Source: Adineta vaga (taxonomy: Eukaryota > Animalia > Rotifera). From it: 64,000 nt of DNA. Under the pieces are notes generated by a model. That model worked only from the letters and a program-made list of their open reading frames with translations. It made no database searches and had not been told where the DNA came from. Below, piece after piece: positions 1,021 through 64,000 of this stretch (its first letter is position 1; every line of letters starts with the position of its first letter). Where the stretch lies: contig CP075492.1 in NCBI GenBank assembly GCA_021613535.1, forward strand, positions 248,001-312,000, read 5' to 3'. The position numbers and the translations under genes were made by a program.

Positions 1021-4000
1021 CTTCACTTGTGATATTTGATTGTCGATCAAATATAACATCATCGATTTCCTTAGCTTCCTTCGCCAATATAAGATCAAGT
1101 TTCGATACAGCTGTCCCACACATGTTCACTTCATCCACTATTCCATTCGATACAAACAATTGTTCAATACAATATGAAAATCGTCCACCTATATCTGTAA
1201 CAGTTCCATCATCAAATAAATCATGAGAACATATCAAATGCAATGATAATCGATTATTTTCTAATGTTGGATCATAAATAAATGTTAGCATAAAATCAAA
1301 TTTAGCTGCTTCATTCGATTGCTCTAACATTACTGGCTCTAATTTTGTATCATTCATCGATAAGTAACTCTCACTTTCAGATAATGTGATAAAATTAAAC
1401 ATTATTTCCAAAAAGTTAAGATTCGATTGGTTGGCATGAAAGTCATTAAGAATATGTTGAAGTGGATAATGAGAATGTTTAAGTATTGATAAACACATTT
1501 CTCTTACAGAATGAACAACTTCATCAAATGACCAATCTCCATTGAGTTGAATACGATATGGTAATGTTGCTACAAACATTCCTATCATATTATACAATTC
1601 AGATCGATATCGATTGGCATTTATACTACCAACACATAAATCAGTTTGATTGTGAGATAATTTAAATAGAAATACATAAAATATCGATAGTCCAAGTTGA
1701 AAAAATGTAAGATGATGTGATGATGCATAGTTTAGAAATGATGTACATGTAACATCATTTAGTATTATTTGAGTTGTAGCACCTAAGCCAGATCGATGAT
1801 GAATTGATGAACGAGATCGATCATATGGTAATGATAATGAATGTTGAAGATCACATCCTTGAAGTTGAGAATACCAAAACTCACGAGATAAGGTCATATC
1901 CATGACATGTTCATGAACAGAATAATCAACATATTGAAATGAATTGTCATCTAGAGATAGCGAACTATGATCTTGATAAGCAAGAGAAAGATCACGAATA
2001 AAGATTGATGTTGATGCACCATCAAAGAAAGCATGATGAACAGTAAATAATATTAAATCATCTCTATTCAACATATCATCTTCTTCATTTGAACTGTGTG
2101 TGTGAGAACGAAGAATATGACAATTAATGACATGTCCTTTTGATAAATCAAATAAATCACATTTATTCAAGATTCTCTTCACAATTTCATTCATATCGCC
2201 ATCTTCTCTGGAAACATTCACTATTGAAAAACCAAATGTTTCACTATTATTGCTTAAAGTATTCATATCTCGACAATCTTGTACAATAATACCATTTTGA
2301 TCAAGATAAAGTGCTGTTCTCAGAATCTGATGTTTTCTAATGATACATTGATATGCATGATATAATCGTGAAATTGATATATGATGGTCATTTATCGATG
2401 ATAGACGATATATTAATGGAATAACATACATATTTGTATTGTTATCTGTCGAAGAAGAAGAAGAAGAAGAAGAAGAAAATCGAATATTTTCATCTAAGAA
2501 AATGCGTTCTTGAGCAAAGGATGCTTTCGCTAAAGTGAGAAATAGAATGTGGTTATTAGAGTATTTTTGAGATTATATTTGTTACCTGTAAGGATATTTA
2601 ATGAATGCCAAGAATGATCATCTTTACTCAATTCGGTATTGAGAATCTGATGAATAAGTTTTGCATGATCAATGATAGTTGGATGTTGAAATAGATCAGT
2701 AATAGCAATGGAATTTATTTCTAATCGAAATTCTACTTTATAGTGATGTAGAAGTTGCATAATAATTAATGAATGGCCACCAATAGAGAATATGTTTGTA
2801 TTAGTAGAGATTTGTTTTTGTTTCAATAGATCACACCATATATGATGAATAATAGATTCAATTTTATTTGTTGGTTCTACTAAATCGTTAGTATTGTTGA
2901 GTTTAGTTGAAGAGAGAACAAGGGAATCAGGTGAGGGCAATCGTTTTCGATCAATTTTTCCATTTGGATTGAGAGGTAATTTATCAAGAATAATGAAATA
3001 AGATGGAATCATATGCGGTGGAAGATGTGATTGACAATATTCATGTAATTCTTTTTCACTAACGACTGAACTTTGAACATAAGCAACTAAATGATCTTCA
3101 CCCCATTTCACCACAACACAAGTAGATATCGATGTAATACTAAGTAGGCATCGTTCAATTTCACCAAGTTCAATTCTTTGTCCATGTAGTTTGACTTGGA
3201 AATCTTTCCTTCCTTGATAGTTTAAGTTACCGTTAAAATCCATTTTAACCATATCACCTGTACGATAATTAATATCGCCATCGATTTCGATAAGTGCTTG
3301 TGCTGTCAGATCATCACGGCCAAGATAACTGGCAAAGATCCCAATTCCTCCAACAAACAGTTCTCCTTCTTGGTTGATCACCACTCTTTGTAAATGTATA
3401 TCCAAAAGTAAATGACGATAGTTTGGTAGTGGTCGTCCAATTGAAATATTTTCGGTTTCTATCATTTGATTCAATAGATGAATAGTAGAGACAACTGTCG
3501 TTTCGGTTGGACCATATATATTCCATATGTTACACTTCACTATTCCAATATTTACAATCAGATGTTTTAATTTGTCAGGGAATGGTTCTCCTTAAAAAAA
3601 TATGAAATTTGATCGTAGAATATATTTGACGAAAAAACTTAACGGCACACTGTCGTATGCTTGTAAGATTCTGATACAAATATATGAAAAGCAAATAGGA
3701 CGAAAGAAGACTACGGTTATATTCTCGCACTAAATGATCATTGAATTCGCTGCCAACTGACTCCGAATCATTAAATGTGACAATACAACTGTAGGAATGA
3801 CTGTATACGAATTATATTACGTTGTCTACACACACTTGATTATCAACTTACCAACACTACAAAGTGATCGAAGATATTTGACAGCATGATGCATGTTAGA
3901 TTGGTTAATAAAAGTGAAGAAATGAAAAAGCAAACTTGGAACAGTGTGTATATATGTAATTTGTTTGTCGTATAACACTTTTGATAGATAATCAAAATCA

Positions 4001-6330
4001 AAAGTTTCTTGTGGATGAAGCATAACTAATGTAACGCCTTTTGATAACAAACCAAGTATTTCGTGAATATGTATGTCGAATGAATATCGTGACATTTGAA
4101 TAACGGTGTCACTTTCGGCCAATATTTTGGCTCCAATAAAAGAATGCATATGTTCAGAGAAATTTCGATGTCGGATTCGAACCTACAAAAAAAGATAAGT
4201 GCGAAACAGATTTCAGAACATATATATACGAACTGCTTTCGGCATTCCAGTTGAGCCACTTGTGAAAATGATGTATGCGATACAATCCGGTGTTATAATC
4301 ACATTCGATAACCGATTTTCAATAATTCTATACATAATCACGTCGATAAACAGTATCAGATTAATATGGCATGTGATAATAACATCATTGAACTTGGACT
4401 TAGTTGATGACTCAACGAGCACAATTCGACTTTCAATTTGTTCGAAAAGAGAATGTAGCCGATGAGGTGGATCTCGTGGAGATAATGGACAATATACACC
4501 ACCTACCATCTCAATTGCCATTATACCAATTACCTAAAACACGAGAAACTTCCTGATTATAAACATCACAAAATTATCCAACGCAACCTACCATTGATAT
4601 ACTTCTCTCAACACATTGACAAATAATATCACCAACATTTACACGATATTCATTCAATAGAGTCAAAGACAATACTTGAACATAATATAACAGTTCACAA
4701 TATGTCAACGACTGTTCATCTAATTCTACAGCTAACTTTTGTGAATAGATCATCGCTTTAGAAACAAACTCATGATGAATGCATTTGACAGATGGATATG
4801 ATATTTGTGTATTATTCATTGATTGTACAAGTAATTGTTCAGTTGGTAGTGTTAATGATAATTCATACAGTGGTTTCTTCGATTGACTATCAATAATAGA
4901 TGCACATAGATCATACAACAGTGAATGAAATTGTTGTGAAATCTTATTCACAGTTTCCACGTGAAACAAATCCAATGATGCATCGATTGTACATGAAAGT
5001 TCATTAGGATCCAAAGTATGATGAAAAGTGAGAATAAAATCAAATTTACTCATCACTTCATCTTCACTAATCTCAATCGAATATGGTGCTAAAATAAGTT
5101 CATTATCACCAAGATTTACTTTGTCTTGATCGTCATTTGTCATCGATGTTATAAACTGGAATGATGTATCAAGAAATGCAGGATTTGATAGATGAGGATG
5201 TTGTGCAAGAATACGTTGAAGTGGAAAATATGAATATTTCATAGTATTTGTCATCAAGACTCGCATTTGTTGAGTGAATTGATGAAACGAAGAATGAGGA
5301 TCAAGTTGACATCGAAGAGGAATAGCATTGACAAACATTCCAATTAGAGATCTAAATTCATCTCGATAACGTCCATCTGTATTTATTCCAATACAAAGAT
5401 CTTGTTCTCCATTAGTTAATTTGAATAAAAGAATAAAATAAATTGTGAGTGCCAAATACTCAAGTGAAATGTTATTTGTCGATGCATATGTAAGAAAGTA
5501 ATGTGAAAGATCTTGTCCAAAATCAAACGAAATAGATGTTCCACGACCAGTTCGATGTTCATTTGCAAGACGATATCGATCATATGGTAATGAAAGAGAT
5601 TGATCAAGTTTACAGTCATGGAGAGTATCAAGCCAAAACATTTCTGCACCAGTCATTGACATTCCTCGTTCGATAGCAGCATCTACATAGAAGAACAACG
5701 ATGAATGACATATGAGAAAGAAAAAGTGCGATGTTGAAGATGTATACTTACAATCAAGATATCGAATATTCATTTCATCATCATTGTTGTTGTTATTGCT
5801 AAGTAATTCACCTGTTGTATATACTTGATTAAGATCATGAAGAAAGATATGCATTGATGGAAAATCAAATGCTGCATGATGAAAATTGAAGATGATTATA
5901 TCTTTATGATGAAGTAGATGATCGGAAGAGATGTGTTTGTAATAGACAAGATGACATCGAAAGACAAGACCTTGAGTAAGATTGAAGAGTTGAGGATTTC
6001 GTTTTTCTTCATGTATGATATTGTTGAGTTGTTGTTGTGTTTCATAAGTACTCTCAATAAATGTAAATAATGTCTTTTGATCTGTGGTAATGTCTATGAT
6101 TCGTTGCATCAATATATTTTTATCTTTGTCGAAAATGAATGCTGTATGAAGTGCAAGATGTTTGCTGATAGTGAGATCGAGTGCATGTTGAAGTTGTTTG
6201 ACTGATATAGTATTGTTTGTAGAAAGGTGATAAACGAAAGGCATGTTGTAGATTGCTACTTGTGGATTTTGAGGATCGAATCTCATTTGTTCGTCGAGCC
6301 AAATGCGAGCTTGTGCATATGATGCTGGTG
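1021..6330 (-). CDS. NRPS module M7 (C-A-T(alpha)-C(alpha))
   Basis: Exons 5752-6330, 4592-5682, 4234-4533, 3852-4182, 2586-3590, 1021-2529 (4815 nt = 1605 aa). Code DIHHCVIVVK. Followed by a donor at 1020 and an intron that copies 15673-16690, implying a further module beyond the window. Confidence 0.9.
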
Positions 6331-9300
6331 CTATAGTAATTGCAGTTTATGTGTGTAACAATAAAAGTGTCAACGATATACAGGACAGGATGTATTAGCG
6401 TCTATGATGATTCGCTCTATATTGACCTTGAGATTAAGATGGTCCTTCTAGTCTGATTAGCTTAGAACATCTGCCCGGGTAGCAAAAGATGTGGGTTCGA
6501 ATCCTACGTATGCTATCTTTTCTTTATTTTCTTCTATATCAGGTTTCTGTCACTTATGTCTCTTCCCTAGCTATAATATGAAGCCAATACGATGAAACAG
6601 ACTTTTTGCTGATAACTTTATTCATAGTCTGTGCCTCTCTCAAAATACAGGCTGTATTCTCGCTTGTTTAATCTAACTATTGTCTTCTAATGTGAGTTTT
6701 CGAAAAAGAGTTAAACAGTATAATTGATTTCAAATTAAGGATAGTGTAAAGCGGGTAACACGTTGGTCTCTGAGTTAACGAGAAATTTGATTTTTTGGCA
6801 AGTTCAAAAAATCAGCTGTAATACTTAGGGCAATCCAAAAGTAGTGAGGGAGGTACTCGTTTCCTTAACCAGGGATATAAAAAGAATTTCTTTTTCCACT
6901 AATGGATAGAGCGTGGTTTGCTCTATCTATCCATGCTATGTGATCACTATTAAACTGCGACTATGATAACAAAATTTTGATAGGATCTCTTTCTGTCGCA
7001 TATTCACTGGTAGCACGAACAAGAATGCTTGTGAGTATTTTTGGAATAACTTCTGATAGAAACAGGATAGACAACTGCCGTTTTCACCGTTGGAAAGAGG
7101 AGATGAGGACGCATCGAGCTATGTATCACTAATTTTTCCAATCTACTTTTTATAAGGTTTCAGCTGGCTTTTTAAAGAGGAAATCTATTCCATAAGTTGT
7201 TTACAGTAAGTTTTCAATAATCGTGTTCATATTCAAACTACTAATTGGATATCTACAGGCTGCGAAACACTCAGCTATTTAATACAATTATTTATGAATA
7301 CTATCTATTCTTAAGAAACCTCTACTACGATATTCTATCAAATTTTTCGCCTTTTCTTCTTTTTTATAAAACAAGATTTTTTTCGCCGGTTAGAAAATTG
7401 AATAAAAAATGTCGGAACTCATAATAGAAAACTCGATAGTATACTGTTCAATGCGTTTTCGTCTCCTTTTTCCAACGGTGAAAACTGCAGTTGTCTATCC
7501 TGTTTCTATCAGAAGTTATTCCAAAAATACTCACAAGCATTCTTGTTCGTGCTACCAGTGAATATGCGACAGAAAGAGATCCTATCAAAATTTTGTTATC
7601 ATAGTTGCAGTTTAATAGTGATCACATAGCATGGAAAGATAGAGCAAACCACGCTCTATCTATTAGTGGAAAAAGAAATTCTTTTTATACCCCTGATTAA
7701 GGAAACAAGTACCTCCCTCACTACTTTTAGATTGCCCTAAGTATGTTATCTGTAAAACTGATCAAAAGCCGCCATGGTTGAGTGGTTACGTGTTCGACAC
7801 GTAGCTACTAGGTACTGTGTTCAAACTTCAGTAACGTCAGGCATGGAATGAAGCTGGACAAGTCACTAACGGCTAAGTTGTCTGAAAATGACTCAATCCA
7901 CATGAGTCATTCGTACTGACTACACACTTAGTCAGTATGTTGGACGGCAGAGGGTCCAGATACCACCGTCCGTAAAAAGAAAAAGACGAAAGAAACCGGC
8001 TGCATGTGGATAAAAATACTAATAATAGCCGCGGCCGGCCGGCAGCGGGCGTTAAGCCTATGCGACGTTATTATTATATTATTATTATTCTTATAAAACT
8101 GATCAAACGATCTTTTAGGATTAGTACTAAACTCAATGAAAATGATGACTTGTTTGTTATTTCGAAAAATTTCATCGATAGTCCAGACACCGAGGTATAT
8201 ATGTATGAGAGGTATAACGGTCTTTGCAATCTGATAGTTGGAAGCGGTTTTATGCAGTCTAAGCCGTTTAGAGCGATCTAAGTGTTCTATGTGGTCTTGT
8301 GGTTTAGAGCGGTATAATCAAGGGGGAGGGGGGGGGGGAGAAGCAAGACTTCATATACTTCAAACAGAATTTGAAATCTCATGAAGTACCGTGAATTACT
8401 GTGAAGTATGAGTGAAGTATGAGTGAAGTATTAATGAAGTATTAGTGAAGTACTAGTGAAATAGAGTGAAGTATGATTGAAGTAGATTGAAGTACCAATG
8501 AAGTCTCGCTTTTCCTCCCTTAGCTATAATGCGATCTAGGCAGCACAACAATCTTAGAGATCATAGATTGCATTGGTTAGGGGGCATAGATCACTTTACT
8601 GCTTAGATCGTATAGATAGCAGCAGAGCGTTATAGCATGAATAGTGCTGTAAATAACGTAGCTAATATAAATGGTATTTATATATATATATATTTCATTT
8701 TGTTACAAAATTATCACGGACATCAAATTGATATACTCTGTTTTTTTGGTGAATAAAAATCATTGGTCATTGTTATGTAGTCGATAGCTTTATTACGGTA
8801 GGACACGTTTTAACAGTTTTTTTAATCATAGAAGCATTGCTTTATTAACATCAATGAGACATCCGTGTCACAAAGGTTGTCTGCAGTTGAAATGATCCTT
8901 TTCGTTCTGCATATGCTAGTGCCTTACATAGTTTTTATCTGTCGATGATGGCAAAATAATAAAAGACCACCACACTATCGAAAATTTAACAAAATCCCTC
9001 TTGCGATGAGATACATCACACACAACCTTCCTATAACCGTAAATTCTAGCTGATGGAACGTACATACTTTCCAAAGCTTGATATTAGTAATGGATGTTTA
9101 TACACACTGTATACATATGCCTAAAACTCACGTCTATATTTCCACTAGTAGTACACTTAGATTATAGTCATATCTTTAAGAACTCATTTATTGCTTCAAA
9201 AAATTGAGCAGTCAGACAGCAGAAAAACAGAGGAATTGCCGTATTCGTAAGTCATCTTGACAGAATTGAGAACACTATGTTTTTCAAAAATTACCGAGAT

Positions 9301-12300
9301 GTCAAATATTTTACGGAGTTATTCTGTAGAGCTATCAGAAAAATACGAATCTAAGTCTGTATGAAATTGTTATTGCTGTTTCTTGTAATCATTCATTGAT
9401 TTATTCATAACACAAGAACGTGATAAAGGCGTATGCGATTATGAAAAGTCATAATCATCTTATTTCTCTTTTTCACAATGAATGTTTCATTTTTCACTCA
9501 TGTTGAAACTCTACTTATGATAAGTTCTTCATGCTTCTTATGCCAGAGGGTAAAAGAAGTGAATGTAGTATGGGCACAAATGGAGTAACAGACGATAGAC
9601 TCTGTAGAAAAGTAAAACTAGATTAATTTTCTTTTTTCGAAAATTCTCAAATGAATGAATCAATCGAACGTTAACCATTACAGTTTCAACAGCGAAAAGT
9701 AAACTCAAATGCAGATCCATATTATACGAAAGTCCTGAGAAATATGTCGTATGCAAATACTCCCCAAATCGATGAAGTTTTTTTGCAACATTTGATCTTA
9801 ATAAAGAACCTTGAAGAGTGCGTATTCTCTTACAGAATCTTCTTCTTTATCTCACCCAACTTAAGACTGTGAGGGTGAGGATGGTCTTTAGCATAAATGC
9901 AATCTAAAGAAGCTCAGATTTTAGCAGATTTCAGCAACTGTTTCTTTTGATATTTCAATGCTTTAGGAAGTTTTGTAGCATCTACGAAGCCTTTTGAAAG
10001 CTTCCGTAGAACCTCGACTATTATAGAATGTATAGTCACATATTATATGACATCATGAAGAGCTGTTTCTCAGTAAAATATGTATCTTTAAGGAGGGAAA
10101 ACAAGAAAATTGGAAAACATACCTTCAAACATTATATGTGGTTGTCGACAAAATATAACATCATCAATTTCGCTAGCTTCACTCGGTAAAATAAGACTAA
10201 GTCGTGATCGAGATATGAGACATGTATCCATTTCATTCATTGTTTCAGTAGATGAAAACAATTGTTCAATACAGTATGAAAATCGTTCAGCTATACTTGC
10301 AATAGTTTTCTTATCAAATAAATCATGAGAACCAACTAAACTAAATGATAATTTACCATTTTCAAATGTTGGATCATAAATGAATGTTAGCATAAAATCA
10401 AATTTAGCTGCTTCATTCGATTGCTCTAACATTACTGGCTCTAATTTTGTATCATTCATCAGTAGGTAAGTGACACTTTCAGACAAAGTGATAAAATCGA
10501 ACATTGTTTCCAAAAAGCTAAGATTAGATTGATTGAGATGAAAGACACTGAGAATATGTTGAAGTGGATAATGAGAATGTTCAAGAATTGATAAACACCT
10601 TTCTTTTACATAATGAACAAGTTCATCAAATGACCAATTTGCATTGAGGTGAATACGATATGGTAATGTTGCTACAAACATTCCTATTACATTATGTAAT
10701 TCAGCTCGATATCGATTAGCATTGAGACAAGAAATACATAGATCATCGTCACGAGTTAATCTGGATAGAAATAGATGGAATATGGACAATCCAAGTTGAA
10801 AAAGTGTAACATGCTGTGATGATGCATAATTGACAATCGATGTGCTTATTTGATCGTTAAGTGTGATATGAATTGTAGAAGCTAAGCCAGATCTCTCGTG
10901 ATTGGATGAACGAGATCGATCATATGGTAACAATAATGGACGTTCGAAATTATATGTTTCTAACTGTGAAAACCAAAATTCTTGTGATGGTTTCATGTCA
11001 ATTTGACGTTCATGGATAGTGTAATCAATATATTGTAATGCTTCTTCGTCATCTTTCTCTGACCATTCTGAAGCGTTATTATAAGCAAAACAGAAATCTT
11101 TGAAAAAAATTGGTCCACATGATCGATCATATGCTGCATGATGAAGAGCAATTACTAGAACATGGGAACTTGTTATCAATTGATTATCATTATTTTTGTT
11201 AATTGAGTTCTGATGTTGAAGTATTTGACAATGAAAAACACGACCTATTGATAAATCAAATAAATTAGGATCAAAAGTTAGTTGAGTAATTATATTTTGA
11301 AGTTCATTGTTATCTTTGAACGTTCGATTTGCAACTATCGTGAATGTGTTATTGGTATCTGTAATATATTGTTCTAAGATGCCATTATCGGTGTTAAATT
11401 TGATAGATGTATGTAGTATTTTATGTTTGTTCAAGATATATTGAAGAGTTTTCAATAAACGCGTGAATGACAATGATCCTTGAGTAATTCTTAGCACCAT
11501 TAGTTCATTATAAATAGCAATATTTTTTGAAAAACGAACTTGTTCATCAAGAGAGATGCGTTCTTGGACAAAAGAAGCAATACCTAGGAATTGAACGAAA
11601 GAATGTATGAATTCATCCAATAATTTTCTAATAGATATATTCACCTCGATTGATATGCAATGAATGCCAAACTGTTGCTTGCATATCATTGTTTGTAACT
11701 GTTTGAAGTAGTTGTGAATGTTGAAATATAGTTGGCTGTTGAATAAATGAGCCTAACAAGAGTGTGTGAGTATCAAAATTGAACAATGATTGATAGCGAT
11801 GATAAAGTTCAATGAATAAAAGAGAATGACCACCAATGGTAAAAAAGTTTGTAGTCCTGGAAATATGATGTCCTTTATAATCAAGAACTTGTCGCCAAAC
11901 ATTACATATACGAGACTCTAATTCATTGAGTGGTGCTTCGAAGTGATTATCTGTTGATACAGTTGCCGAAGAGAAGTTAGGTGAAGGTAAATGTTTTCGA
12001 TCAATTTTTCCATTTGGATTGAGAGGTAATTTATCAAGAATAATGAAATGAGATGGAATCATATGCGGTGGAAGATGTGATTGACAATATTCATGTAATT
12101 CTTTTTCACTAACGACTGAACTTTGAACATAAGCAACTAAATGATGTTGACCCCATTTCATGACAACACAAGTAGATATCGATGTAATACTAAGTAGGCA
12201 TCGTTCAATTTCACCAAGTTCAATTCTTTGTCCATGTAGTTTGATTTGAAAATCTTTTCTTCCTTGATATTGAACAAGATTATTCTGATCTATCTTGACA

Positions 12301-15300
12301 AGATCACCAGTTCGATAAAACAACATATCATCGATATAAATCACTGCTTTTGATGTTAAATCATTGCGTCCAAGATAACCAGCAAAGACGCCTACTCCTC
12401 CAACAAGTAGCTCTCCTTCTTGGTTTATCAATACACTTTGCAAATATTCATCCAGAATTATATGGCTGTAGTTTGGAAATGGTCTGCCGATAGGTACATT
12501 CTCGCTAGCCGTGCCTTGATGGATACGATGAACAGTAGAACCAACGGTGACTTCGGTTGGACCATACAAGTTCCACAATTCGATAGTGTGTTGAGCAATG
12601 CTCACTAGCAAGTGCATCAGCGTCAAAGTAAAAGGCTCGCCTAAATAAATACACAGCGATTTAGATAGCAATTGATATCTGTGGGAATTCACCTACCAGC
12701 ACAGCCAATATATCGTAGATGCTTTACAGAATTCTGTGCGCTCATTTCTTGTAAATAAGAGAAAAAACTTCGAAGCCAACTTGGAACAGTCGCAACAAAA
12801 CTTATTTCCTTTTCTTTCATCACATTGGCAAGATATGGAAAGTGCAGAATTCCACCTGGGTGTAACATTACTAAACCGCTTCCGGTTGTGAAAGCAGCGA
12901 ATATATCCTCCAGGTGAGCATCGAAAGAGCAACGGGCCATTTGCAATGTTATATCGCTTTTCTTCTTCATACCATTTCTCATCAATGAACAAATAAAATG
13001 AGCAATATTTCGATGCCGAATTTGAACCTAAAAGAAAGCAAAACAGATATTTACATCTCTTCCAGATCGAAACACTATGCATAACCAACCGCCTTTGGTA
13101 TTCCAGTTGAGCCACTTGTGCAAATAATGTATGCAATGTTATCTGGCGTAACTACGACGTTTGACAATTGATCAAAGTCTATGTTATTTTGAATGTCATT
13201 ATTACTCAATATTGAATCAACATTAACAACAATATTTCCATCATGTATCTTCTCTATTGTCAGCCAATGCGCAAGAATAAGATGACTTTGAGTTTGCTCG
13301 ACAAGTTTATATAAACGATCTTTTGGATCTCGTGGAGATAATGGACAATATACACCACCTACCATCTCAATTGCCATTATACCAATTACCTAAAATGAAC
13401 AAAGATCTCTCATTAAACATCAAGAGGCACTCTTCTCATTCATCAACTTACCATTGATATACTTCTCTCCACACATTGACAAATAATATCACCAACATTT
13501 ACACGATATTCATTCAATAGAGTCAAAGACAATACTTGAACATAATATAACAGTTCACAATATGTCAACGACTGTTCATCTAGTTCCACAGCTAACTTTT
13601 GTGAATAGATCATCGCTTTAGAAACAAACTCATGATGAATGCATTTGACAGATGGATATGATATTTGTGTATTATTCATTGATTGTACAAGTAATTGTTC
13701 AGTTGGTAGTGTTAATGATAATTCATACAGTGGTTTCTTCGATTGACTATCAATAATAGATGCACATAGATCATACAACAGTGAATGAAATTGTTGTGAA
13801 ATCTTATTCACAGTTTCCACGTGAAACAAATCCAATGATGCATCGATTGTACATGAAAGTTCATTAGGATCCAAAGTATGATGAAAAGTGAGAATAAAAT
13901 CAAATTTACTCATCACTTCATCTTCACTAATCTCAATCGAATATGGTGCTAAAATAAGTTCATTATCACCAAGATTTACTTTGTCTTGATCGTCATTTGT
14001 CATCGATGTTATAAACTGGAATGATGTATCAAGAAATGCAGGATTTGATAGATGAGGATGTTGTGCAAGAATACGTTGAAGTGGAAAATATGAATATTTC
14101 ATAGTATTTGTCATCAAGACTCGCATTTGTTGAGTGAATTGATGAAACGAAGAATGAGGATCAAGTTGACATCGAAGAGGAATAGCATTGACAAACATTC
14201 CAATTAGAGATCTAAATTCATCTCGATAACGTCCATCTGTATTTATTCCAATACAAAGATCTTGTTCTCCATTAGTTAATTTGAATAAAAGAATAAAATA
14301 AATTGTGAGTGCCAAATACTCAAGTGAAATGTTATTTGTCGATGCATATGTAAGAAAGTAATGTGAAAGATCTTGTCCAAAATCAAACGAAATAGATGTT
14401 CCACGACCAGTTCGATGTTCATTTGCAAGACGATATCGATCATATGGTAATGAAAGAGATTGATCAAGTTTACAGTCATGGAGAGTATCAAGCCAAAACA
14501 TTTCTGCACCAGTCATTGACATTCCTCGTTCGATAGCAGCATCTACATAGAAGAACAACGATGAATGACATATGAGAAAGAAAAAGTGCGATGTTGAAGA
14601 TGTATACTTACAATCAAGATATCGAATATTCATTTCATCATCATTGTTGTTGTTATTGCTAAGTAATTCACCTGTTGTATATACTTGATTAAGATCATGA
14701 AGAAAGATATGCATTGATGGAAAATCAAATGCTGCATGATGAAAATTGAAGATGATTATATCTTTATGATGAAGTAGATGATCGGAAGAGATGTGTTTGT
14801 AATAGACAAGATGACATCGAAAGACAAGACCTTGAGTAAGATTGAAGAGTTGAGGATTTCGTTTTTCTTCATGTATGATATTGTTGAGTTGTTGTTGTGT
14901 TTCATAAGTACTCTCAATAAATGTAAATAATGTCTTTTGATCTGTGGTAATGTCTATGATTCGTTGCATCAATATATTTTTATCTTTGTCGAAAATGAAT
15001 GCTGTATGAAGTGCAAGATGTTTGCTGATAGTGAGATCGAGTGCATGTTGAAGTTGTTTGACTGATATAGTATTGTTTGTAGAAAGGTGATAAATGAAAG
15101 GCATGTTATAGATTGCTATTTGTGGATGATCAGGATCGAATCGTATTTGTTCGTCAAGCCAAATGCGAGCTTGTGCATATGATGCTGGTGCTAGAATAAT
15201 TGTGGTTTGTTTTGTGCATGTAACAATAAAAGCACGAATGATGTGAAGGATATGATAGAACATTCTCTCTACTTGTCATGGTATTCTGCCATGAGTCGTA

Positions 15301-18300
15301 TATATAAGTTCATGATGCTTGAGTCATTTGTATATGATGAAACTTCGTGAGCCATATACGTGTGACTAGGATTAGTGTATGAAGGAGAGTGTGTATGTTT
15401 AGTTGGGACATCATCGCTTATTTTTCATCAATAATAGAGGTAGATAAGCTCAGGGTCATGAACCGAATTCAAATGAACTAAAGAACTGATGAGATAGCTC
15501 ATTTGAGCGAACTAAACTGTACAAACAGTTCTTTTCAACAAACTGAACTTTTCAACTAGTTCAGTTCATATGAAATCAGCTCTATCATGTCCTACACTAG
15601 GGAGATACCCTAGGATCCTCTAGTCCTATACCAGGCGGTTTCCTCAATTTCGAACTGAGGGCATCCATCTGATATAGCATACACGGACTCAAGGGTATCG
15701 CCCTAATATAGCATATGGGGGATTTAAGATTGTCTCTCTGATATAGGACATGATACAGTTGAGCTCATGTGAACTGTTAGAATAGTTCAGTCGCAAGCTG
15801 AGCTGTTTGAAAAGGTGGAAGGTTGTGAGCTAAATTCGAACTTTGCCTATCCCTAATCAATAAGCTTATGTCTCATAACGTTCTCTTACACGCAGACTCA
15901 GTATTTGTGCAAGTGGTAGCTTACTACTGTATTCAAAGATTAGTTGTGGATAAAGAACAGAAAAATGGAAGTATTCTAGATAACTGCAAAGTTACACAAA
16001 AAACACTTTCTAGAAGTCTGCAATATATGTAATACTTAATGCAATTTTTTCTTGAATACTGTCATAAAAGTACAAATTGAATTCTATGACGAGTAGTGAT
16101 CAGTTTAGTTTCAATTTCTTTGGAGAAAATATTTTATCATACCTCTGTTGCTACTGTGAGTTCCACTTATCTCTTCATACCCTTAACTTAGATAGTGAAT
16201 AAATTAAAAATGCTCTAATGAAAACAGAAGAAAGAATTTGTTCTCTATCAAAAATAAGAAAATTAGATAACATTTCTTTTTTGGAAACTCGTCAATTAAT
16301 CAACAGAATGACGACTATATAGCTTTTATAGTTGCGGTGGCTAACTCTCGATGCAACTCGACATATATTGTTAAGAAAGTATATTCAAACGACACTGTCA
16401 TCATTTATGGAATAAATCTCAGTGGATTACGAACACCAAACGTGTGTCGAATAAGCCACTTCTAATGATTCTCACGTCATCCTATCGCCCACAATGCAAG
16501 CCAAGATATTCGCAAAAATGAATGAAGATGACGCCGTCTTTAAAAGGCAAAAAGACTGCAGAAACCAATTGCATATGGAAATCATTAAAATCAAAGTTAA
16601 CACATACCTAAGATAAATGTATAGGTCATTATTAGTAATATGGGTCATCAACAACAATAAAATTTTAATCACAACAAGACAGAAACCTACCTTCACTTGT
16701 GATATTTGATTGTCGATCAAATATAACATCATCGATTTCCTTAGCTTCCTTCGCCAATATAAGATCAAGTTTCGATACAGCTGTCCCACACATGTTCACT
16801 TCATCCACTATTCCATTCGATACAAACAATTGTTCAATACAATATGAAAATCGTCCACCTATATCTGTAACAGTTCCATCATCAAATAAATCATGAGAAC
16901 ATATCAAATGCAATGATAATCGATTATTTTCTAATGTTGGATCATAAATAAATGTTAGCATAAAATCAAATTTAGCTGCTTCATTCGATTGCTCTAACAT
17001 TACTGGCTCTAATTTTGTATCATTCATCGATAAGTAACTCTCACTTTCAGATAATGTGATAAAATTAAACATTATTTCCAAAAAGTTAAGATTCGATTGG
17101 TTGGCATGAAAGTCATTAAGAATATGTTGAAGTGGATAATGAGAATGTTTAAGTATTGATAAACACATTTCTCTTACAGAATGAACAACTTCATCAAATG
17201 ACCAATCTCCATTGAGTTGAATACGATATGGTAATGTTGCTACAAACATTCCTATCATATTATACAATTCAGATCGATATCGATTGGCATTTATACTACC
17301 AACACATAAATCAGTTTGATTGTGAGATAATTTAAATAGAAATACATAAAATATCGATAGTCCAAGTTGAAAAAATGTAAGATGATGTGATGATGCATAG
17401 TTTAGAAATGATGTACATGTAACATCATTTAGTATTATTTGAGTTGTAGCACCTAAGCCAGATCGATGATGAATTGATGAACGAGATCGATCATATGGTA
17501 ATGATAATGAATGTTGAAGATCACATCCTTGAAGTTGAGAATACCAAAACTCACGAGATAAGGTCATATCCATGACATGTTCATGAACAGAATAATCAAC
17601 ATATTGAAATGAATTGTCATCTAGAGATAGCGAACTATGATCTTGATAAGCAAGAGAAAGATCACGAATAAAGATTGATGTTGATGCACCATCAAAGAAA
17701 GCATGATGAACAGTAAATAATATTAAATCATCTCTATTCAACATATCATCTTCTTCATTTGAACTGTGTGTGTGAGAACGAAGAATATGACAATTAATGA
17801 CATGTCCTTTTGATAAATCAAATAAATCACATTTATTCAAGATTCTCTTCACAATTTCATTCATATCGCCATCTTCTCTGGAAACATTCACTATTGAAAA
17901 ACCAAATGTTTCACTATTATTGCTTAAAGTATTCATATCTCGACAATCTTGTACAATAATACCATTTTGATCAAGATAAAGTGCTGTTCTCAGAATCTGA
18001 TGTTTTCTAATGATACATTGATATGCATGATATAATCGTGAAATTGATATATGATGGTCATTTATCGATGATAGACGATATATTAATGGAATAACATACA
18101 TATTTGTATTGTTATCTGTCGAAGAAGAAGAAGAAGAAGAAGAAGAAAATCGAATATTTTCATCTAAGAAAATGCGTTCTTGAGCAAAGGATGCTTTCGC
18201 TAAAGTGAGAAATAGAATGTGGTTATTAGAGTATTTTTGAGATTATATTTGTTACCTGTAAGGATATTTAATGAATGCCAAGAATGATCATCTTTACTCA

Positions 18301-24300: not shown

Positions 24301-27300
24301 AAGCCGATTCGACATTGATGGTTCATGGGAGGGGCAAGTCGTTCGTCGACCTCTCTTTGGTCGACCACTTACGGCTAGCCACTCCAATCCATACCATATT
24401 TCTTCTATTGCTAGTTTCAATAATACTATCTCTCATATCTGATAGATTAACGATCAGCTGCTCTTTTTTTCTTACGTTCTTAATGGCGATTTTTTAATTG
24501 ATGATTTGTGTAAATTATTTATAAGATGAATTGAAAATGAAGCATAAATATCCTGTTCAATTTAACTAACAGCAGTCTAAAGCATTGTGTCGATGTGAAC
24601 GTTAATGCTAGACGTTGACATAACAATCTACAGTACCTTGCACAGTGATTTGGAAAGCCTTCGAAATTTTTCAATGAAAAATTTTCAATAGAGCGACCAC
24701 TCACGGCTAGTCGCTCCAGCCTCAATCTCTACTTTTATTCTAATTCCAAAATGGACGAGAGTTTTCAAACAACGCTATCCTGGTTCGAATAATAGGAATC
24801 GATCGCGAAGATAGATGAGCTGTTTTAACTTATCCACCCTAAAAATAAACTTTGTTGTACTCACATCAGTATAATGCTGCAAAAACATATGCATTTTGTA
24901 ACAGCAGTCACCGATTAGAAAGTACGACGGGCATTTTGATTTATTTACATCTTTTACAAAGCGTTATGCAAACCTTATGGAATTCTACGTAAACATCTCT
25001 TTTATTATTTTACATGGATTATAATTAAACTGAATTAATTGTCTGCTAATGTAGTTTCTCTAAAAACTTGACTTATCTATACAGTTTGACAGTAGGTATT
25101 TACGTATTAATGTTGCCTCCAAGTACACTTCCGTTTAATTAAGTTCAAAAATCGAAATACTGAATCACTTCTAGTGAATTGCAGTGATGTAACATCCTCA
25201 TTCTAGCGGCGTAACCCGGTTTTCAGTCTGGAGGGGGCTCAGCCCCATACATTATTTGAGACTGATCGAAGATAGGGTAACTTTCATCTATTTTGTAATC
25301 ACACATGGTGCTTGCCTTATCTTTATTAATATATTTCTGGAGGGGGCTCAGCCCACCCCAGCCCACCCGGTGGTTACGCCACTACCTCATTCTCAAAATT
25401 TTTTCAAAAAAATAACTTCAGATTCGAGTTGCTCGACCCCGAAAACCCTTGCGTCAATCACTTCCGGATACGTTTTCATTGATTTACGGAATGCTGTTTT
25501 TTGATTGGTTAGGATAGACAGACAAACTTTTTACATTTGCAGCCCAGGATTTGATCGCGATATAACCCTTTCTTTCAGAAAAGGTAATAAATCCACAGTA
25601 CAATTTCTACTCTTATTTATGCATTGCTGAAGCACCCCCAAGAGTTAAGCACAAATGAAGAACTACAAGTAATTGTGACAAGATTAGTAAATATTCCATG
25701 GTGGAGAATAAGTACTTATAAAATAATTATGAAATACAGGTAAAGGAAACATTGTTTTACCTTCAATATAATTAGTATTATTCATGTTTGGTAACGAAAG
25801 ATTTATCAGTGTGAATCCAGAAAGGATCTTTCTAAAGAAATAAAGTAGTTTCTGTAAGATACTGATTAATCCATTTCCGCTTGAAAAAAATACCATGTTT
25901 TCCATTGCGTTTTTCTCCTCGCAAAAAGCTCTCCTCATACATTTAATATTTTATCTTTCTTGCGTGTTCTTGTCACAATTAATAAGTTATTTATCCAATA
26001 TACGAAGTACTAACATGGTATTAGCAAATCTCCAGCAATATGTTGATGGTACTCCTTCAATAATACTTGTTTTTGTAAATATGAAAGATAGTTTCACTTA
26101 TAAAAATTAGATTAACAATCATAATGATATTAAACCATAAGGCATTCTGTTAAAACTAAGACATAATCCTATCAATTTCTCTAATAATTGATCTAAGAAA
26201 AAAAACCTCCACTTATTCTTTTGTTGTGCTTCACTTGAGGGTGCTCATCATTCTTTGCGCTCATTGTTCGATTTCCCCCAAAAATCATCTGCTTTGACAA
26301 AACAGCTGTTAGAGTAACCATACATCAGCTGTACCCCGTCATCTGAGCATTTATATACCGATCCACTTACCAATACTGCAAAGTGATCGAAGATATTTTA
26401 CAACATGGCCCATGTTACATTTGTTGATAAAAGTGAAGAAATGAAAAAGCAAACTTGGAACAGTGTGCATATATGTTATTTGTTTGTTGGATAATACTTT
26501 CGATAGATAATCAAAATCAATAGTTCCTTGTGGATGAAGCATAACTAACGAAGCACCCTTTGATAAAATACCAAGTATCTCTTGAACATGAATATCGAAT
26601 GAACATCGTGCCATTTGTATTGCAGTGTCATATTCGTTGAATGAATTTATGAAAGTCAAAGAATGCATACATTCATCGAAATTTCTATGACGAATTTGGG
26701 CCTATAAAGGAAAAGAGAAAGATTAATTCAACAACAAGAAACAGGCAATAAGCAATAACGAACCGCTTTCGGTACTCCAGTTGAGCCACTTGTAAAAATG
26801 ATGTAAGCAATATTTTTTGGTGTTACTACAATGTTTGACAATTGATCACAGCCAATATTATTTTGATTGTCATTATTAGTTAATATTAAATCAACATTCA
26901 CCACGATTGTTTCATTATGTATCATAGTCTTTGTTAACCAATGAGCAATAACAAGATGACTTTGAGTCTGCTCGACAAGTGTATGCAGACGATATGAAGG
27001 GTCTCGAGGTGATAATGGACAATATACACCACCTACCATTTCTATTGCCATTATACCAATTACCTAGAATGAACAACAATTTCTCCTAAATTCTAAGAGA
27101 CACTCTTCTCATTCATCAACTTACCATTGATATACTTCTCTCCACACATTGACAAATAATATCACCAACATTTACACGATATTCATTCAATAGAGTCAAA
27201 GACAATACTTGAACATAATACAACAGTTCACAATATGTCAACGACTGTTCATCTAGTTCCACAGCTAACTTTTGTGAATAGATCATCGCTTTAGAAACAA

Positions 27301-30300
27301 ACTCATGATGAATGCATTTGACAGATGGAAATGATATTTGTGTATTATTCATTGATCGTACAAGTAATTGTTCAGTTGGTAGTGTTAATGATAATTCATA
27401 CAGTGGTTTCTTCGATTGACTATCAATAATAGATGCACATAGATCATACAACAGTGAATGAAATTGTTGTGAAATCTTGTTCATAGTTTCCACGTGAAAC
27501 AAATCTAATGATGCATCGATTGTACATGAAAGTTCATTAGGATCCAAAGTATGATGAAAAGTGAGAATAAAATCAAATTTACTCATCACTTCATCTTCAC
27601 TAATCTCAATCGAATATGGTGCTAAAATAAGTTCACTATCACCAAGATTTACTTTGTCTTGATCGTCATTTGTCATCGATGTTATAAACTGGAATGATGT
27701 ATCAAGAAATGCAGGACTTGATAGATGAGGATGTTGTGCAAGAATACGTTGAAGTGGAAAATATGAATATTTCATACTATTTGTCATCAAGACTCGCATT
27801 TGTTGAGTGAATTGATGAAACGAAGAATGAGGATCAAATTGACATCGAAGAGGAATAGCATTGACAAACATTCCAATTAGAGATCTAAGTTCATCTCGAT
27901 AACGTCCATCTGTATTCATTCCAATGCATAGATCTTGTTCTCCATTGGTTAATTTGAATAAGAAGATGAAATAAGTCATGAGTGACAAATATTCAAGTGA
28001 CATGTTATTTGTCGATGCATATGTAAGAAAGTATTGTGAAAGATCTTGTCCAAAATCAAACGAAATAGATGTTCCACGACCAGTTCGATGTTCATTTGCA
28101 AGACGATATCGATCATATGGTAATGAAAGAGATTGATCAAGTTTACAGTCATGGAGAGTATCAAGCCAAAACATTTCTGCACCAGTCATTGACATTCCTC
28201 GTTCGATAGCAGCATCTACATAGAAGAACAACGATGAATGACATATGAGAAAGAAAAAGTGCGATGTTGAAGATGTATACTTACAATCAAGATATCGAAT
28301 ATTCATTTCATCATCATTGTTGTTGTTATTGCTAAGTAATTCACCTGTTGTATATACTTGATTAAGATCATGAAGAAAGATATGCATTGATGGAAAATCA
28401 AATGCTTCATGATGAAAATTGAAGATGATTATATCTTTATGATGAAGTAGATGATCGGAAGAGATGTGTTTGTAATAGACAAGATGACATCGAAAGACAA
28501 GACCTTGAGTAAGATTGAAGAGTTGAGGATTTCGTTTTTCTTCATGTATGATATTGTTGAGTTGTTGTTGTGTTTCATAAGTACTCTCAATAAATGTAAA
28601 TAATGTCTTTTGATCTGTGGTAATGTCTATGATTCGTTGCATCAATATATTTTTATCTTTGTCGAAAATGAATGCTGTATGAAGTGCAAGATGTTTGCTG
28701 ATAGTGAGATCGAGTGCATGTTGAAGTTGTTTGACTGATATAGTATTGTTTGTAGAAAGGTGATAAACGAAAGGCATGTTGTAGATTGCTACTTGTGGGT
28801 TTTGAGGATCGAATCTCAATTGTTCGTCGAGCCAAATGCGAGCTTGTGCATATGATGCTGGTGCTATAGCAATTGTATTCTATTCGTGTAGGGATAGAAA
28901 CACCAATGATGTAGAGGTGCTGAGGACGCACTCTCCCGAGTGATAGTTTCATAGGGTGTCTCTCTCTCTTTTACAAGTACGTTCAGTATTCATGCGAGTG
29001 GTAGCTAAGTACTCTCTTCAAAGATGAGCTATGGATAAAAAATAAAAATATATGAGTGGCCTAAATCACTCCACAGTTATATCAGAAGTGCCTGTAAAGT
29101 ATTTTTAAATACTTGAAATATTTAATACGATTATCCTTTAGAACTCTAATTGAAGTACAGAGTGAATTCGACGTTAAGTAGCGATCCAGTAAGTTTCAGC
29201 TTTTATATAGAAAATACTTCACCATGTCTCTCTTTCGATATATATGTTTACACTAATCCCTTCGTTTTCTTTAACAAAGAAAGTAAATGAACTACATATA
29301 CTATAGGTAGAAGCAGAAGCAAATAAAATATATTCTCTATGAGAAACTAAAACAAACTAGATTTTGTCTTTCGAACACTCACAAATGAATCAAACAAGTG
29401 TCAACTATATATCTTTCATAGCTGCGATGGCTAAGTGCTTATGTTGTTTAAGATAAATTGAAACTATATTCTGTGCAAACGTCAGTGGCATCATTCATAG
29501 AATAAATTTCAAGAAATCGGGAACGAAATACTTCTCATAATTCTTACACTAGGGTATGGCCTACAATGTTAGTCACGATTTTAGAGAGGAGGAGTGCAAA
29601 TATCACTGTCTATAAAGAGAGAAAAGCTGTAGAGAGCAGTTTGATATGTAAATCATAACAATTATAGTTGTCATCTACACAAGACACGTCTATGAAAGAT
29701 TATTCGTAATATGGATCATCAACAACAATAAAATTTTAATCAGAACAAGACAGAAACCTACCTTCACTTGTGATATTTGATTGTCGATCAAATATAACAT
29801 CATCGATTTCCTTAGCTTCCTTCGCCAATATAAGATCAAGTTTCGATACAGCTGTCCCACACATGTTCACTTCATCCACTATTCCATTCGATACAAACAA
29901 TTGTTCAATACAATACGAAAATCGTTCACCTATATCTGTAACAGTTCCATCATCAAATAAATCATGAGAACATATAAAATACAATGATAATCTATTGTTT
30001 TGTAATGTTGGATCATAAACAAATGTTAACATGAAATCAAATTGAGCCATTTCATCTGATTGTTCTAATGATCCTTGTTCTAGTTTTGTATCATTCATCG
30101 ACAAGGAACTCTCACTTTCAGATAAAGTGATAAAATCGAACATTATTTCCAAAAAGTTAAGATTCGATTGGTTGGCATGAAAGTCATTAAGAATATGTTG
30201 AAGTGGATAATGAGAATGTTTAAGTATTGATAAACACATTTCTCTTACAGAATGAACAACTTCATCAAATGACCAATCTCCATTGAGTTGAATACGATAT

Positions 30301-33300
30301 GGTAATGTTGCTACAAACATTCCTATCATATTATACAATTCAGATCGATATCGATTGGCATTTATACTACCAACACATAAATCAGTTTGATTGTGAGATA
30401 ATTTAAATAGAAATACATAAAATATCGATAGTCCAAGTTGAAAAAATGTAAGATGATGTGATGATGCATAGTTTAGAAATGATGTACATGTAACATCATT
30501 TAGTATTATTTGAGTTGTAGCACCTAAGCCAGATCGATGATGAATTGATGAACGAGATCGATCATATGGTAATGATAATGAATGTTGAAGATCACATCCT
30601 TGAAGTTGAGAATACCAAAACTCACGAGATAAGGACATATCCATGACATGTTCATGAACAGAATAATCAACATATTGAAATGAATTGTCATCTAGAGATA
30701 GCGAACTATGATCTTGATAAGCAAGAGAAAGATCACGAATAAAGATTGATGTTGATGCACCATCAAAGAAAGCATGATGAACAGTAAATAATATTAAATC
30801 ATCTCTATTCAACATATCATCTTCTTCATTTGAACTGTGTGTGTGAGAACGAAGAATATGACAATTAATGACATGTCCTTTTGATAAATCAAATAAATCA
30901 CATTTATTCAAGATTCTCTTCACAATTTCATTCATATCGCCATCTTCTCTGGAAACATTCACTATTGAAAAACCAAATGTTTCACTATTATTGCTTAAAG
31001 TATTCATATCTCGACAATCTTGTACAATAATACCATTTTGATCAAGATAAAGTGCTGTTCTCAGAATCTGATGTTTTCTAATGATACATTGATATGCATG
31101 ATATAATCGTGAAATTGATATATGATGGTCATTTATCGATGATAGACGATATATTAATGGAATAACATACATATTTGTATTGTTATCTGTCGAAGAAGAA
31201 GAAGAAGAAGAAGAAGAAAATCGAATATTTTCATCTAAGAAAATGCGTTCTTGAGCAAAGGATGCTTTCGCTAAAGTGAGAAATAGAATGTGGTTATTAG
31301 AGTATTTTTGAGATTATATTTGTTACCTGTAAGGATATTTAATGAATGCCAAGAATGATCATCTTTACTCAATTCGGTATTGAGAATCTGATGAATAAGT
31401 TTTGCATGATCAATGATAGTTGGATGTTGAAATAGATCAGTAATAGCAATGGAATTTATTTCTAATCGAAATTCTACTTTATAGTGATGTAGAAGTTGCA
31501 TAATAATTAATGAATGGCCACCAATAGAGAATATGTTTGTATTAGTAGAGATTTGTTTTTGTTTCAATAGATCACACCATATATGATGAATAATAGATTC
31601 AATTTTATTTGTTGGTTCTACTAAATCGTTAGTATTGTTGAGTTTAGTTGAAGAGAGAACAAGGGAATCAGGTGAGGGCAATCGTTTTCGATCAATTTTT
31701 CCATTTGGATTGAGAGGTAATTTATCAAGAATAATGAAATAAGATGGAATCATATGCGGTGGAAGATGTGATTGACAATATTCATGTAATTCTTTTTCAC
31801 TAACGACTGAACTTTGAACATAAGCAACTAAATGATCTTCACCCCATTTCACCACAACACAAGTAGATATCGATGTAATACTAAGTAGGCATCGTTCAAT
31901 TTCACCAAGTTCAATCCTTTGTCCATGTAGTTTGACTTGGAAATCTTTCCTTCCTTGATAGTTTAAGTTACCGTTGAAATCCATTTTAACCATATCACCT
32001 GTACGATAATTAATATCGCCATCGATTTCGATAAGTGCTTGTGCTGTCAGATCATCACGGTCAAGATAACCAGCAAAGATACCAACTCCGCGAATTATAA
32101 CTTCACCTTCTTGGCCAGTTAATATAGGTTGACCAAAGCAGTCGATAACTGTGAAATTGTAGTTGGGCAACGGCCTGCCAAGAGGAATGTTTTCGATATC
32201 TGTTCCTAAGTCAATTCGATGGAATAAAGATTGTAGGGTTGTCTCAGCTGGACCACATAAATTCCACAGCGCATACTGCTGGGCAATATTAATATCTATT
32301 AACTTGACCAGATTGATCGAACAACGTTCACCTAATATATGAAAAAAAAATACGATGACTATCAATCGAAACACTAATACAATTACCCCCTGTGCACAAT
32401 GATCGCAAATATTTAGTAGCATAAGATTTTTTACTCCTTGCGATAAAATTGAAAAGATATTGAAGTAACGTCGGCACAGTATATAAAAAAGTAATTTCTT
32501 TTCTTTCCATCGTCGTGGACAGATATTCGAAATCTAGATTTCCTCTCGGATGTAACATCACTAGAGTTGCTCCAATCACCAAACTTCCAAGTATTTCCTG
32601 AAGATGAATATCGAATGAACATCGTGCAATTTGAATAATAGTATCGTTTCTGTTGAATAAATCAATATGTACTAAAGAATGTACAGATTGAGTAAAATTT
32701 CTGTGCCAAACTTGAGCCTACGTATACCAAAAATATTTACTATACTTCATAGTAATTCTTACGCTATCACTCACTGCTTTCGGTAATCCAGTTGATCCAC
32801 TAGTATAAATGATGTATGCGACACTATTCGCTGCTATAAAAACACTGGACAAGCCATTTAAATAAACATCAATATTTCCACCCCCATAAGCAACTACTAC
32901 ATTCTCAATACTACATAGAATAATATTACAATCGAAAAAGTTTGCTGTTAAGTAATGAGCAAAAACAAGATGACTGTGAGTTTGTTCTACGAGTGCATGT
33001 AGACGATGTGGTGGATCTCGTGGAGATAACGGGCAATATACACCACCTGCCATTAGAATTCCCATTATACCAATTACCTAAAACACGAGAAACTTCCTAA
33101 TTATAAACATCACAAAATTATCCAACGCAACCTACCATTGATATACTTCTCTCCACACATTGACAAATAATATCACCAACATTTACACGATATTCATTCA
33201 ATAGAGTCAAAGACAATACTTGAACATAATATAACAGTTCACAATATGTCAACGACTGTTCATCTAATTCTACAGCTAACTTTTGTGAATAGATCATCGC

Positions 33301-63975: not shown

Positions 63976-64000
63976 CTATATAGAAGAACAAGTGACAAAT

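Follow-up and report, generated by a model that had tools for sequence, protein, structure and literature searches.

Paired condensation domains between successive carrier domains in a nonribosomal peptide synthetase gene of the bdelloid rotifer Adineta vaga

To characterize a repeated arrangement of condensation domains in Adineta vaga, a bdelloid rotifer, we analyzed a stretch of 64,000 nucleotides (Chrom_3:248001-312000, hereafter the window, with positions counted from its first base; GC about 33%) of an assembly that comprises 100.8 Mb in six contigs. Our reading is that the window holds the middle of one spliced nonribosomal peptide synthetase (NRPS) gene, in which each carrier (T) domain would be connected to the next by a didomain of two condensation (C) domains, T(n)-Cpost-Cpre-A-T(n+1), where Cpost is the C domain that follows a carrier and Cpre the one joined to the adenylation (A) domain. 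Neither of the two is an epimerization (E), DCL or dual E/C domain, and to judge from sequence both descend from one LCL-type domain that was duplicated within the bdelloid NRPS lineage. Taken as a whole, with the roles proposed below for Cpost and Cpre, the reading is offered tentatively, as slightly short of an even prospect.

Doubled condensation domains along the gene

The NRPS gene is encoded on the minus strand, as are all features given below, and GT..AG introns, mostly of 45-70 nt with a few longer ones, split its open reading frames (ORFs). Searches and folds were run on single exons or on stored database proteins. Within the window Pfam returned the order Condensation / AMP-binding / AMP-binding_C / PP-binding / Condensation; one Condensation match lies in ORF 10091-11752, after AMP-binding_C and PP-binding in ORF 11631-12692, and another in ORF 4577-6346, ahead of AMP-binding in ORF 4216-4533. 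Mapping by tblastn with pieces of one module placed seven Cpre-A-T-Cpost units (U1-U7) in the window. With its flanks the gene comprises 11 modules, seven of them in the window, and runs on Chrom_3 from an initial C domain, C_N (331326-329821), to a Pls-type membrane tail (237504-235418) in the order C_N-[Cpre-A-T-Cpost]x10-Cpre-A-T-Pls-type membrane tail. Doubling of the C domain affects each of the ten inter-module junctions as well as the beginning of the line (C_N-Cpre).

An earlier note, made from the letters of this DNA, had described every module as C-A-T-C, with tandem C domains that both retain HHxxxD. Pfam, tblastn and aligned motifs bear this out except at the two ends of the line, where module 1 opens with the distinct first domain C_N and the last T is followed by the membrane domain rather than by a C. 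Module 1 is fed by a fatty-acid-type synthase, and the domain that differs there is C_N, not Cpre. The span 4592-11583, to which the note referred, is bounded by exon ends: 11583 is the first base of a Cpost exon, and 4592 is the last base of a Cpre exon, before GTAGGT. All seven T domains in the window read GGHSL, as had been stated; that of U6 lies at 11775..11912 (Pfam PP-binding, residues 261-306 of ORF 11631-12692).

Cpost occurs in two types that are 52% identical to each other, and the type goes with that of the upstream A-T in the tblastn map. Type I is found in U1 (59509..61011), U4 (29762..31270) and U5 (16691..18199), located by tblastn and splice sites, and in U7 (1021..2529, an exon of 1,503 nt; Pfam Condensation 3.4e-48). 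Type II is found in U2 (49371..50831) and U3 (40545..42005), located by tblastn, motif and splice sites, and in U6 (10123..11583, 1,461 nt; Pfam Condensation 1.6e-47), where RNA contigs of four runs match the exon. The Cpre copies, which are 91-98% identical to one another and 31-34% identical to Cpost, were located by tblastn and splice sites at 62885..64000 (U1, continuing past the window end), 56874..58612 (U2), 43843..45578 (U3) and 13452..15190 (U6), with the His motif as further support at 33136..34874 (U4) and 27125..28863 (U5).

In U7 the Cpre coding sequence falls into two exons. Exon a (5752..6330) carries the C1, C2 and HHAAFDF motifs and is supported by Pfam, tblastn, its acceptor and codon-level constraint past the acceptor; exon b (4592..5682) carries the C-terminal lobe, the C-A linker and the start of the A domain, is supported by Pfam and tblastn, and ends at the donor ATCAATG^GTAGGT (here and below ^ marks the splice point). 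Between them lies a 69-nt phase-1 intron (5683..5751; GATT^GTAAGT...TGTAG^AT) that is stop-free and in frame within the Cpre ORF, and its removal gives RYLDYAAIE as in homologues. Every Cpre copy hides a 69-nt intron at the corresponding position; it is read through by ORF scans and in some gene models (e.g., P0001), which thereby gain 23 false residues.

The same context recurs in gene models. Upstream of Cpre, where the context could be read (n = 44), another C domain was found in 42 cases (12 C_N, 20 Cpost I and 10 Cpost II) and a T domain in none, and downstream an A domain was found in 30 of 32. Cpost is preceded by T in 19 of 21 cases, and Cpost II-like domains can adjoin A directly downstream. 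The Cpost tail retains the first part of the C-A linker (ILPxE...), which fits a C domain that once sat on an A domain, while Cpre carries the full linker. The two Cpre lacking a first C ahead of them are A. steineri P0192, in which methyltransferase domains precede Cpre-A, and P0237, which is likely a mis-model.

Cpre-type domains were detected in A. vaga clusters on Chrom_1, 2, 3, 5 and 6, where canonical single-C clusters coexist with them, and also in A. steineri, A. ricciae, Rotaria sordida, Rotaria sp. and environmental contigs. Four A. vaga NCBI models (P0169, P0174, P0216 and P0225; I4U23_...) are 600-900 aa long and each holds only a Cpre-type C and part of an A domain, so that none of them represents a whole multi-module NRPS gene.

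The stretch A(3' part)-T-Cpost-intron-Cpre-A(5' part) is contained in both of two recent duplications, one of 8.0 kb (4468-12484 vs 43719-51731, 98.4% identical) and the other of 5.6 kb (98.8%). As their breakpoints fall within A domains, the C-C connector and its intron are inherited as a block while the A-domain cores differ. In U5 and U2 the A2 and A3 exons of the A domain are set apart by gaps at 19300-26350 (about 7 kb) and 51900-56100 (about 4.2 kb), respectively; ORFs inside the long introns, including the U5 A-domain gap, had no Pfam match.

Subtype and catalytic motifs of the two domains

His motifs were counted on columns aligned by a hidden Markov model, with members from Adineta, Rotaria and environmental contigs. 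In the window the post-T domains read HHAFFDG (U1, U4, U5, U7), HHAAYDR (U2, U6) or HHVAFDR (U3), and the A-linked domains HHAAFDF (U2, U3, U6, U7) or HHEAFDF (U4, U5), which agrees with the motifs given in the earlier note. Across the aligned members HHxxxD is intact in 126 of 136 Cpre, 19 of 20 Cpost I, all 24 Cpost II and 14 of 16 C_N. The residue after it is Gly in Cpost I (HHxxFDG, 19/20), R or Q in Cpost II (24/24) and always F, Y, L or I in Cpre; the A-linked domain was rightly said to lack the Gly of HHxxxDG. The three type II Cpost copies are 97% identical, and of the 14 domain residues at which they vary, 10 fall in alignment columns 192-213, around the His motif (41400-41470, 50230-50300 and 11040-11180), giving the catalytic loops HHAAYDRSCR, HHVAFDRSSQ and HHAAYDRSCG; type I is invariant there.

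Both C types carry C1 as S(Y/F)AQxRIW/F and C5 as IGMFV..(L/I)P.R. Of the LCL motif set, C1, C2 and C5 are all present in Cpost; Cpre has C1 and C5 and reads LHT at C2 in 58% of 142 members. Changes private to Cpre are G to F/Y after the Asp, LRT to LHT in C2, an altered Ala ahead of C5, and TL to AI in C5. The Cpost core motifs show the same pattern as the sole C domains of rotifer T-C-A modules. The suggestion that the post-T domain might be a new C subtype is not sustained by this comparison: it matches those sole C domains at every core motif, and the derived domain is the A-linked one.

Trees were built from all C-family domains of the 150 best representatives of a full HMMER search, with references taken from those proteins (E by the EGHGR motif, DCL by direct succession to E, LCL by position; no named starter references). 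The FastTree tree (178 rows) and the IQ-TREE tree (LG+C20, 75 rows) are in agreement. E domains form one clade (support 100) on a long stem, DCL domains form one clade (97-100) without any rotifer domain, and all rotifer C domains fall in one clade (100) within the LCL side (96-98). Inside the rotifer clade, the sister group (93) of Cpre (100) is a Cpost-like clade (99), which also holds the sole C of T-C-A modules of A. vaga (L005), Rotaria sp. (P0020) and R. magnacalcarata (P0043), as well as that of P0028, an unchecked rotifer model.

Structure-based comparisons point the same way. The best PDB sequence matches of both C types are LCL-type Txo1/2, TycC6, DhbF, LgrA and the fuscachelin C domain, and no E-domain structure appeared among the matches of Cpost or Cpre at E<=1e-3. 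A profile of the Cpost clade, which leans toward LCL because it includes bacterial LCL rows, scored 350-485 bits for LCL domains, 307 for the X domain 4tx2, 220-240 for DCL domains (SrfA-C, TycB1), 109 for the TycA E domain and 103 for TqaA C_T. AlphaFold models reached a pLDDT (predicted local distance difference test) of 87 for Cpost I and 79 for Cpre, the latter lowered by retention of the 69-nt intron in the model, a stretch that itself scores low. In Foldseek searches with both models C domains led, and no stand-alone E-domain structure was among the top 50. Together with the C1 and C5 motifs and the trees, these matches uphold the LCL-like character that the earlier note had assigned to both domains.

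E-domain signatures were sought directly. Aligned with the EGHGRE and RTVGWFT of 12 reference E domains are NANRYR and MIGMFVATLPYR in Cpost, and NTDGRYR and LIGMFVNAIPLR in Cpre. The E marker TIGR01720 gave no match for Cpost I, Cpost II or Cpre at E<=0.01, nor any in the whole 100.8-Mb assembly despite its dozens of NRPS modules; a B. subtilis control was positive. The rotifer C1 columns differ from the DCL type, and the dual E/C motif HH(I/L)xxxxGD is absent in 13 of 13 C domains in the window. Cpost also differs from X and C_T domains, as its HH is intact and as it would be internal if its conserved donor is used. The earlier note had itself judged the post-T domain to be no classical E domain, and this view is supported, since Cpost has neither EGHGRE/RTVGWFT, nor a TIGR01720 match, nor an E-domain PDB match, and lies outside the E clade in both trees; the clustering with E domains that the note had named as evidence to the contrary did not appear.

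The locus has an entry in the supplement of Nowell et al. 2024 (PMC11258130, file 12), 'region3.1 Chrom_3:225210..345004, intact, 20965, NRPS_term', in which ORF coordinates equal window coordinates + 248,000. Its antiSMASH labels give both C types as Condensation_LCL, without comment, and never read Epimerization. The doubled C domain was not mentioned in the searchable text and supplements on rotifer NRPSs. The domain list is already in the published supplement; the description, the subtype analysis and the question raised here are not part of it.

These results also bear on the leading alternative, in which the line follows T-E-C logic, Cpost being an LCL-derived tailoring domain that acts on T(n), most likely by epimerization, and Cpre the domain that forms the bond. 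Cpost does sit exactly where an E domain would, after PP-binding and before Cpre, its two types go with the type of the upstream A-T, and Cpre bears the full C-A linker. With no TIGR01720 match genome-wide and no Epimerization label in the published supplement, the rotifer is moreover left without a known route to D-residues. T-E-C is topologically the better-known arrangement, and the solved E-C-A cross-module structure of PvdL (9lcq) demonstrates that such a topology works. The domains themselves argue otherwise: Cpost lacks the E motifs and has Asn at the column of the catalytic Glu of EGHGRE, its close relatives are the sole C of T-C-A modules and share its motifs, and in module 1 its slot is taken by C_N, where there is no upstream amino acid to epimerize. 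Carriers ahead of E domains usually read GGDSI, and those of the window read GGHSL. Finally, Cpre has a C1 of LCL rather than DCL type and falls outside the DCL clade. On balance we consider this alternative unlikely.

A further alternative, already raised in the earlier note as a merely structural role for one of the two C domains, is that one of them is catalytically silent and, in the manner of X or interface domains, acts as a spacer, docks the A domain or recruits an enzyme working in trans. It would account for the replacement of the Gly of HHxxxDG (F/Y/L/I in Cpre, R/Q in Cpost II), for the constant attachment of Cpre to A, and for the variation of the Cpost II catalytic loop among copies otherwise 97% identical. 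Known silent C-like domains such as the X domain, however, have lost HHxxxD, and here the motif is kept in 93-100% of each clade, from Adineta and Rotaria to environmental members (126 of 136 A-linked and 43 of 44 post-T domains), which makes a purely silent C domain unlikely. The sole-C domain P0043 also reads HHxxxDR, so that loss of the Gly does not amount to loss of function, and the ratio of nonsynonymous to synonymous substitutions (dN/dS) among paralogues is 0.35-0.5 in both C types. The structural proposal is weakened by these observations and is retained as an improbable rival.

The junction between Cpost and Cpre

Splice sites, codon constraint and A. steineri gene models indicate that Cpost is very probably spliced to Cpre, yielding a continuous T-C-C-A polypeptide. 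The gaps from Cpost to Cpre in the window measure 0.9-5.7 kb and are without a long ORF. Every Cpost is a single symmetric exon of 1,461 or 1,503 nt, phase 1 on both sides, and the phase-1 donor at its end, (AGT/TTT)GAAG^GTA(G/T)G, lies at a homologous codon in 7 of 7 Cpost, although the two types are only 52% identical; past each donor the sequence is unrelated and a stop codon follows after 7 to 10 codons. On the other side, the phase-1 acceptor AG^CA CCA GCA TCA is present at all six junctions, with diverged sequence upstream of it, and over the 14 codons past it, which encode the C1 motif, differences between paralogues are mainly synonymous. No in-frame ATG occurs near the Cpre acceptor in U2, U4 and U5, and Cpre must therefore be translated by way of an exon upstream of it. 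This donor and acceptor pair recurs in the same phase around introns of about 330 nt in the Chrom_1 and Chrom_2 clusters, and it is also found in A. steineri. About 28 NCBI gene models of A. steineri, which are predictions, span the Cpost-Cpre junction, and those inspected read ...ILPxE...NE^APAS(F/Y)AQARIW.

Between Cpost of U6 and Cpre of U7, the predicted phase-1 intron is 3,792 nt long (6331..10122; donor TTTGAAG^GTATGT, acceptor TATAG^CACCAGC) and has no RNA contig on it. It contains an inverted repeat with 318-nt arms (6821-7138 / 7427-7744, 93% complementary), which may be a foldback or MITE-like element (MITE, miniature inverted-repeat transposable element), and the sequence of the intron recurs at 45579-49370. 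A tRNA-like stretch in the Cpost-Cpre intron was not called as a tRNA gene by ARAGORN. An apparently intron-less C-C junction in A. steineri P0001 and P0021 was likewise dropped, since the contigs show introns of about 1 and 1.4 kb there, with a different predicted acceptor.

RNA contigs from four runs classed as RNA by tool guess, examined over 5,951 bases, fall on exons only. In one of them, from run X1, the 61-nt phase-1 intron with GT..AG ends that separates the T exon of U6 from its Cpost exon (11584..11644) is spliced out, and the Cpost exon is accordingly used in at least some RNA. Constitutive skipping of the post-T exon, the other outcome that the earlier note had set against its own view, is contradicted for at least this part of the RNA.

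Some observations weigh against a continuous T-C-C-A product. No RNA contig from the four runs crosses the Cpost-to-Cpre junction, and the gene models that span it are predictions; the Cpost-Cpre introns are also unusually long (0.33-5.7 kb) compared with the introns of 56-69 nt elsewhere in the gene. A protein search with the junction region of P0183 returned only A. steineri NCBI gene models. In a third alternative T-C-C-A is not the main protein, either because the Cpost exon is skipped (T-Cpre-A) or because transcripts end in the intron after Cpost and yield shortened synthetases with a C at their end, with separate C-A-T-C genes as the limiting case. Because the Cpost exon is symmetric (phase 1-1), skipping it would keep the frame; the early stop codon past each donor and the 0.9-5.7 kb of the next introns would suit termination, and the junction is where NCBI's A. 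vaga models, and several from A. steineri, end. Against this stand the T-to-Cpost splice seen in RNA, the donor conserved at the end of every Cpost and of C_N, for which a terminal exon would have no need, and the lack of a start codon of its own ahead of the constrained codons of Cpre. At the very start of the gene, moreover, where skipping would be pointless, the C_N-Cpre boundary shows this junction too, and Cpost is intact and constrained in all ten copies. We regard this alternative as highly improbable and retain the spliced C-C connector in what follows.

Roles of the two domains and comparison with known tandem arrangements

For the two roles we favor, provisionally and as a nearly balanced call, an assignment in which Cpost or C_N condenses and Cpre adds a second step. 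The T-linked first C (Cpost I or II, or C_N in module 1) would keep the ancestral condensation reaction, transferring the chain on T(n) to the amino acid that T(n+1) carries. Cpre would be a derived, obligate partner of the A domain, with its His pair kept and with its own signature, HHxxFD(F/Y) and C2 LHT, and, like the second C of the icosalide tandem, would act on the aminoacyl-T(n+1) acceptor, where it would catalyze or gate a second step; this step could be a stereo-inversion or another modification. Cpost/C_N is preferred as the chain-transferring domain because of its motif pattern, its context in gene models, the presence of C_N in module 1 and the linker.

Several points weigh against this assignment. 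The T-x-C-A layout is the same as in T-E-C-A, where the A-linked domain condenses, and if Cpost is the condensing domain, T(n+1) must reach past Cpre. Cpre has no sequence match to the starter C CDA-C1 at E<=1e-3, contrary to what the icosalide precedent leads one to expect, and by fold the RzmA starter domain ranks 37. Bacterial LCL domains share 83 conserved columns, of which 46 are retained in Cpre and 48-49 in Cpost, so that Cpre is not much more decayed than Cpost, and the dN/dS range given above does not separate the two types.

It is possible, if rather doubtful, that Cpre represents a new functional subtype of the C family, arisen from a duplicated LCL domain in bdelloids, marked by HHxxFD(F/Y) and performing a second catalytic step in every elongation cycle, such as a stereo-inversion on the acceptor side or some other alteration of the backbone. 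If this is true, bdelloid lines use two C-type active sites for each residue, and to our knowledge no NRPS has been described that works in this way. In NRPS enzymology and engineering, the identity of the bond-forming domain and the purpose of additional C-family domains are under active discussion. Here a C-C connector is fixed in an animal lineage, across dozens of modules, several clusters and at least two genera, with both His motifs kept; given that the genome has no E marker, it offers a natural and repeated test case of two condensation-type active sites sharing two carriers. With a symmetric Cpost exon and a long intron after it, the line might in principle be shortened, or its connectors switched, by splicing. 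There are consequences for annotation as well, as tools of the antiSMASH type call both domains LCL and would thus count a residue for each C. Rotifer peptides are induced against fungal infection (PMC11258130), and the doubled C may explain their stereochemistry.

Within bdelloids, the canonical C-A-T modules (A. vaga Chrom_1 13.7 Mb, Chrom_6 1.02 Mb and Chrom_5 0.69 Mb; Rotaria) belong to the same rotifer C clade as the doubled domains. They differ in having one C per junction and no Cpre, and the sole C of Chrom_5 0.69 Mb, P0020 and P0043 lies in the Cpost-like clade. A second C-family domain about 10-45 residues after the first and before A is also encoded in bacterial-like NRPSs from sequencing-run or metagenome data (P0073, P0106, P0125, P0132, P0087 and P0105), which have one to three such T-C-C-A modules per protein and lie outside the rotifer clade. 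The second domain of P0087 and P0105 is highly divergent (HHALMDGAA-type) and falls near the E clade with weak support.

Among characterized systems, T-E-C-A lines (PvdL E2-C3-A3, PDB 9lcq; the E domains of TycA and GrsA) likewise place two C-superfamily domains between T and the next A. The rotifer line departs from them in that its first domain is LCL-type, its second is not DCL, its carriers read GGHSL, and the doubling occurs at every junction and at the start of the line. The Cy1-Cy2 tandem of the vibriobactin synthetase VibF and of the anguibactin NRPS (PMC10510592) resembles the proposed rotifer split in that paralogous C-superfamily neighbors divide one elongation cycle; those domains carry DxxxxD, form heterocycles and occur once per synthetase, whereas both rotifer domains carry HHxxxD and are LCL-type. 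In module 3 of the icosalide synthetase of Burkholderia gladioli, a tandem C-Cstart-A-T has both C domains active on one acceptor carrier (PMC6553374, PMC10510592). There only one module has the tandem, and its second C, of starter type, attaches a fatty acid, whereas the rotifer gene, known from its sequence, repeats the pair in every module and shows no sign of a second acyl donor. The two systems share the T-C-C-A order and, if the roles proposed here are right, a T-linked C that transfers the chain.

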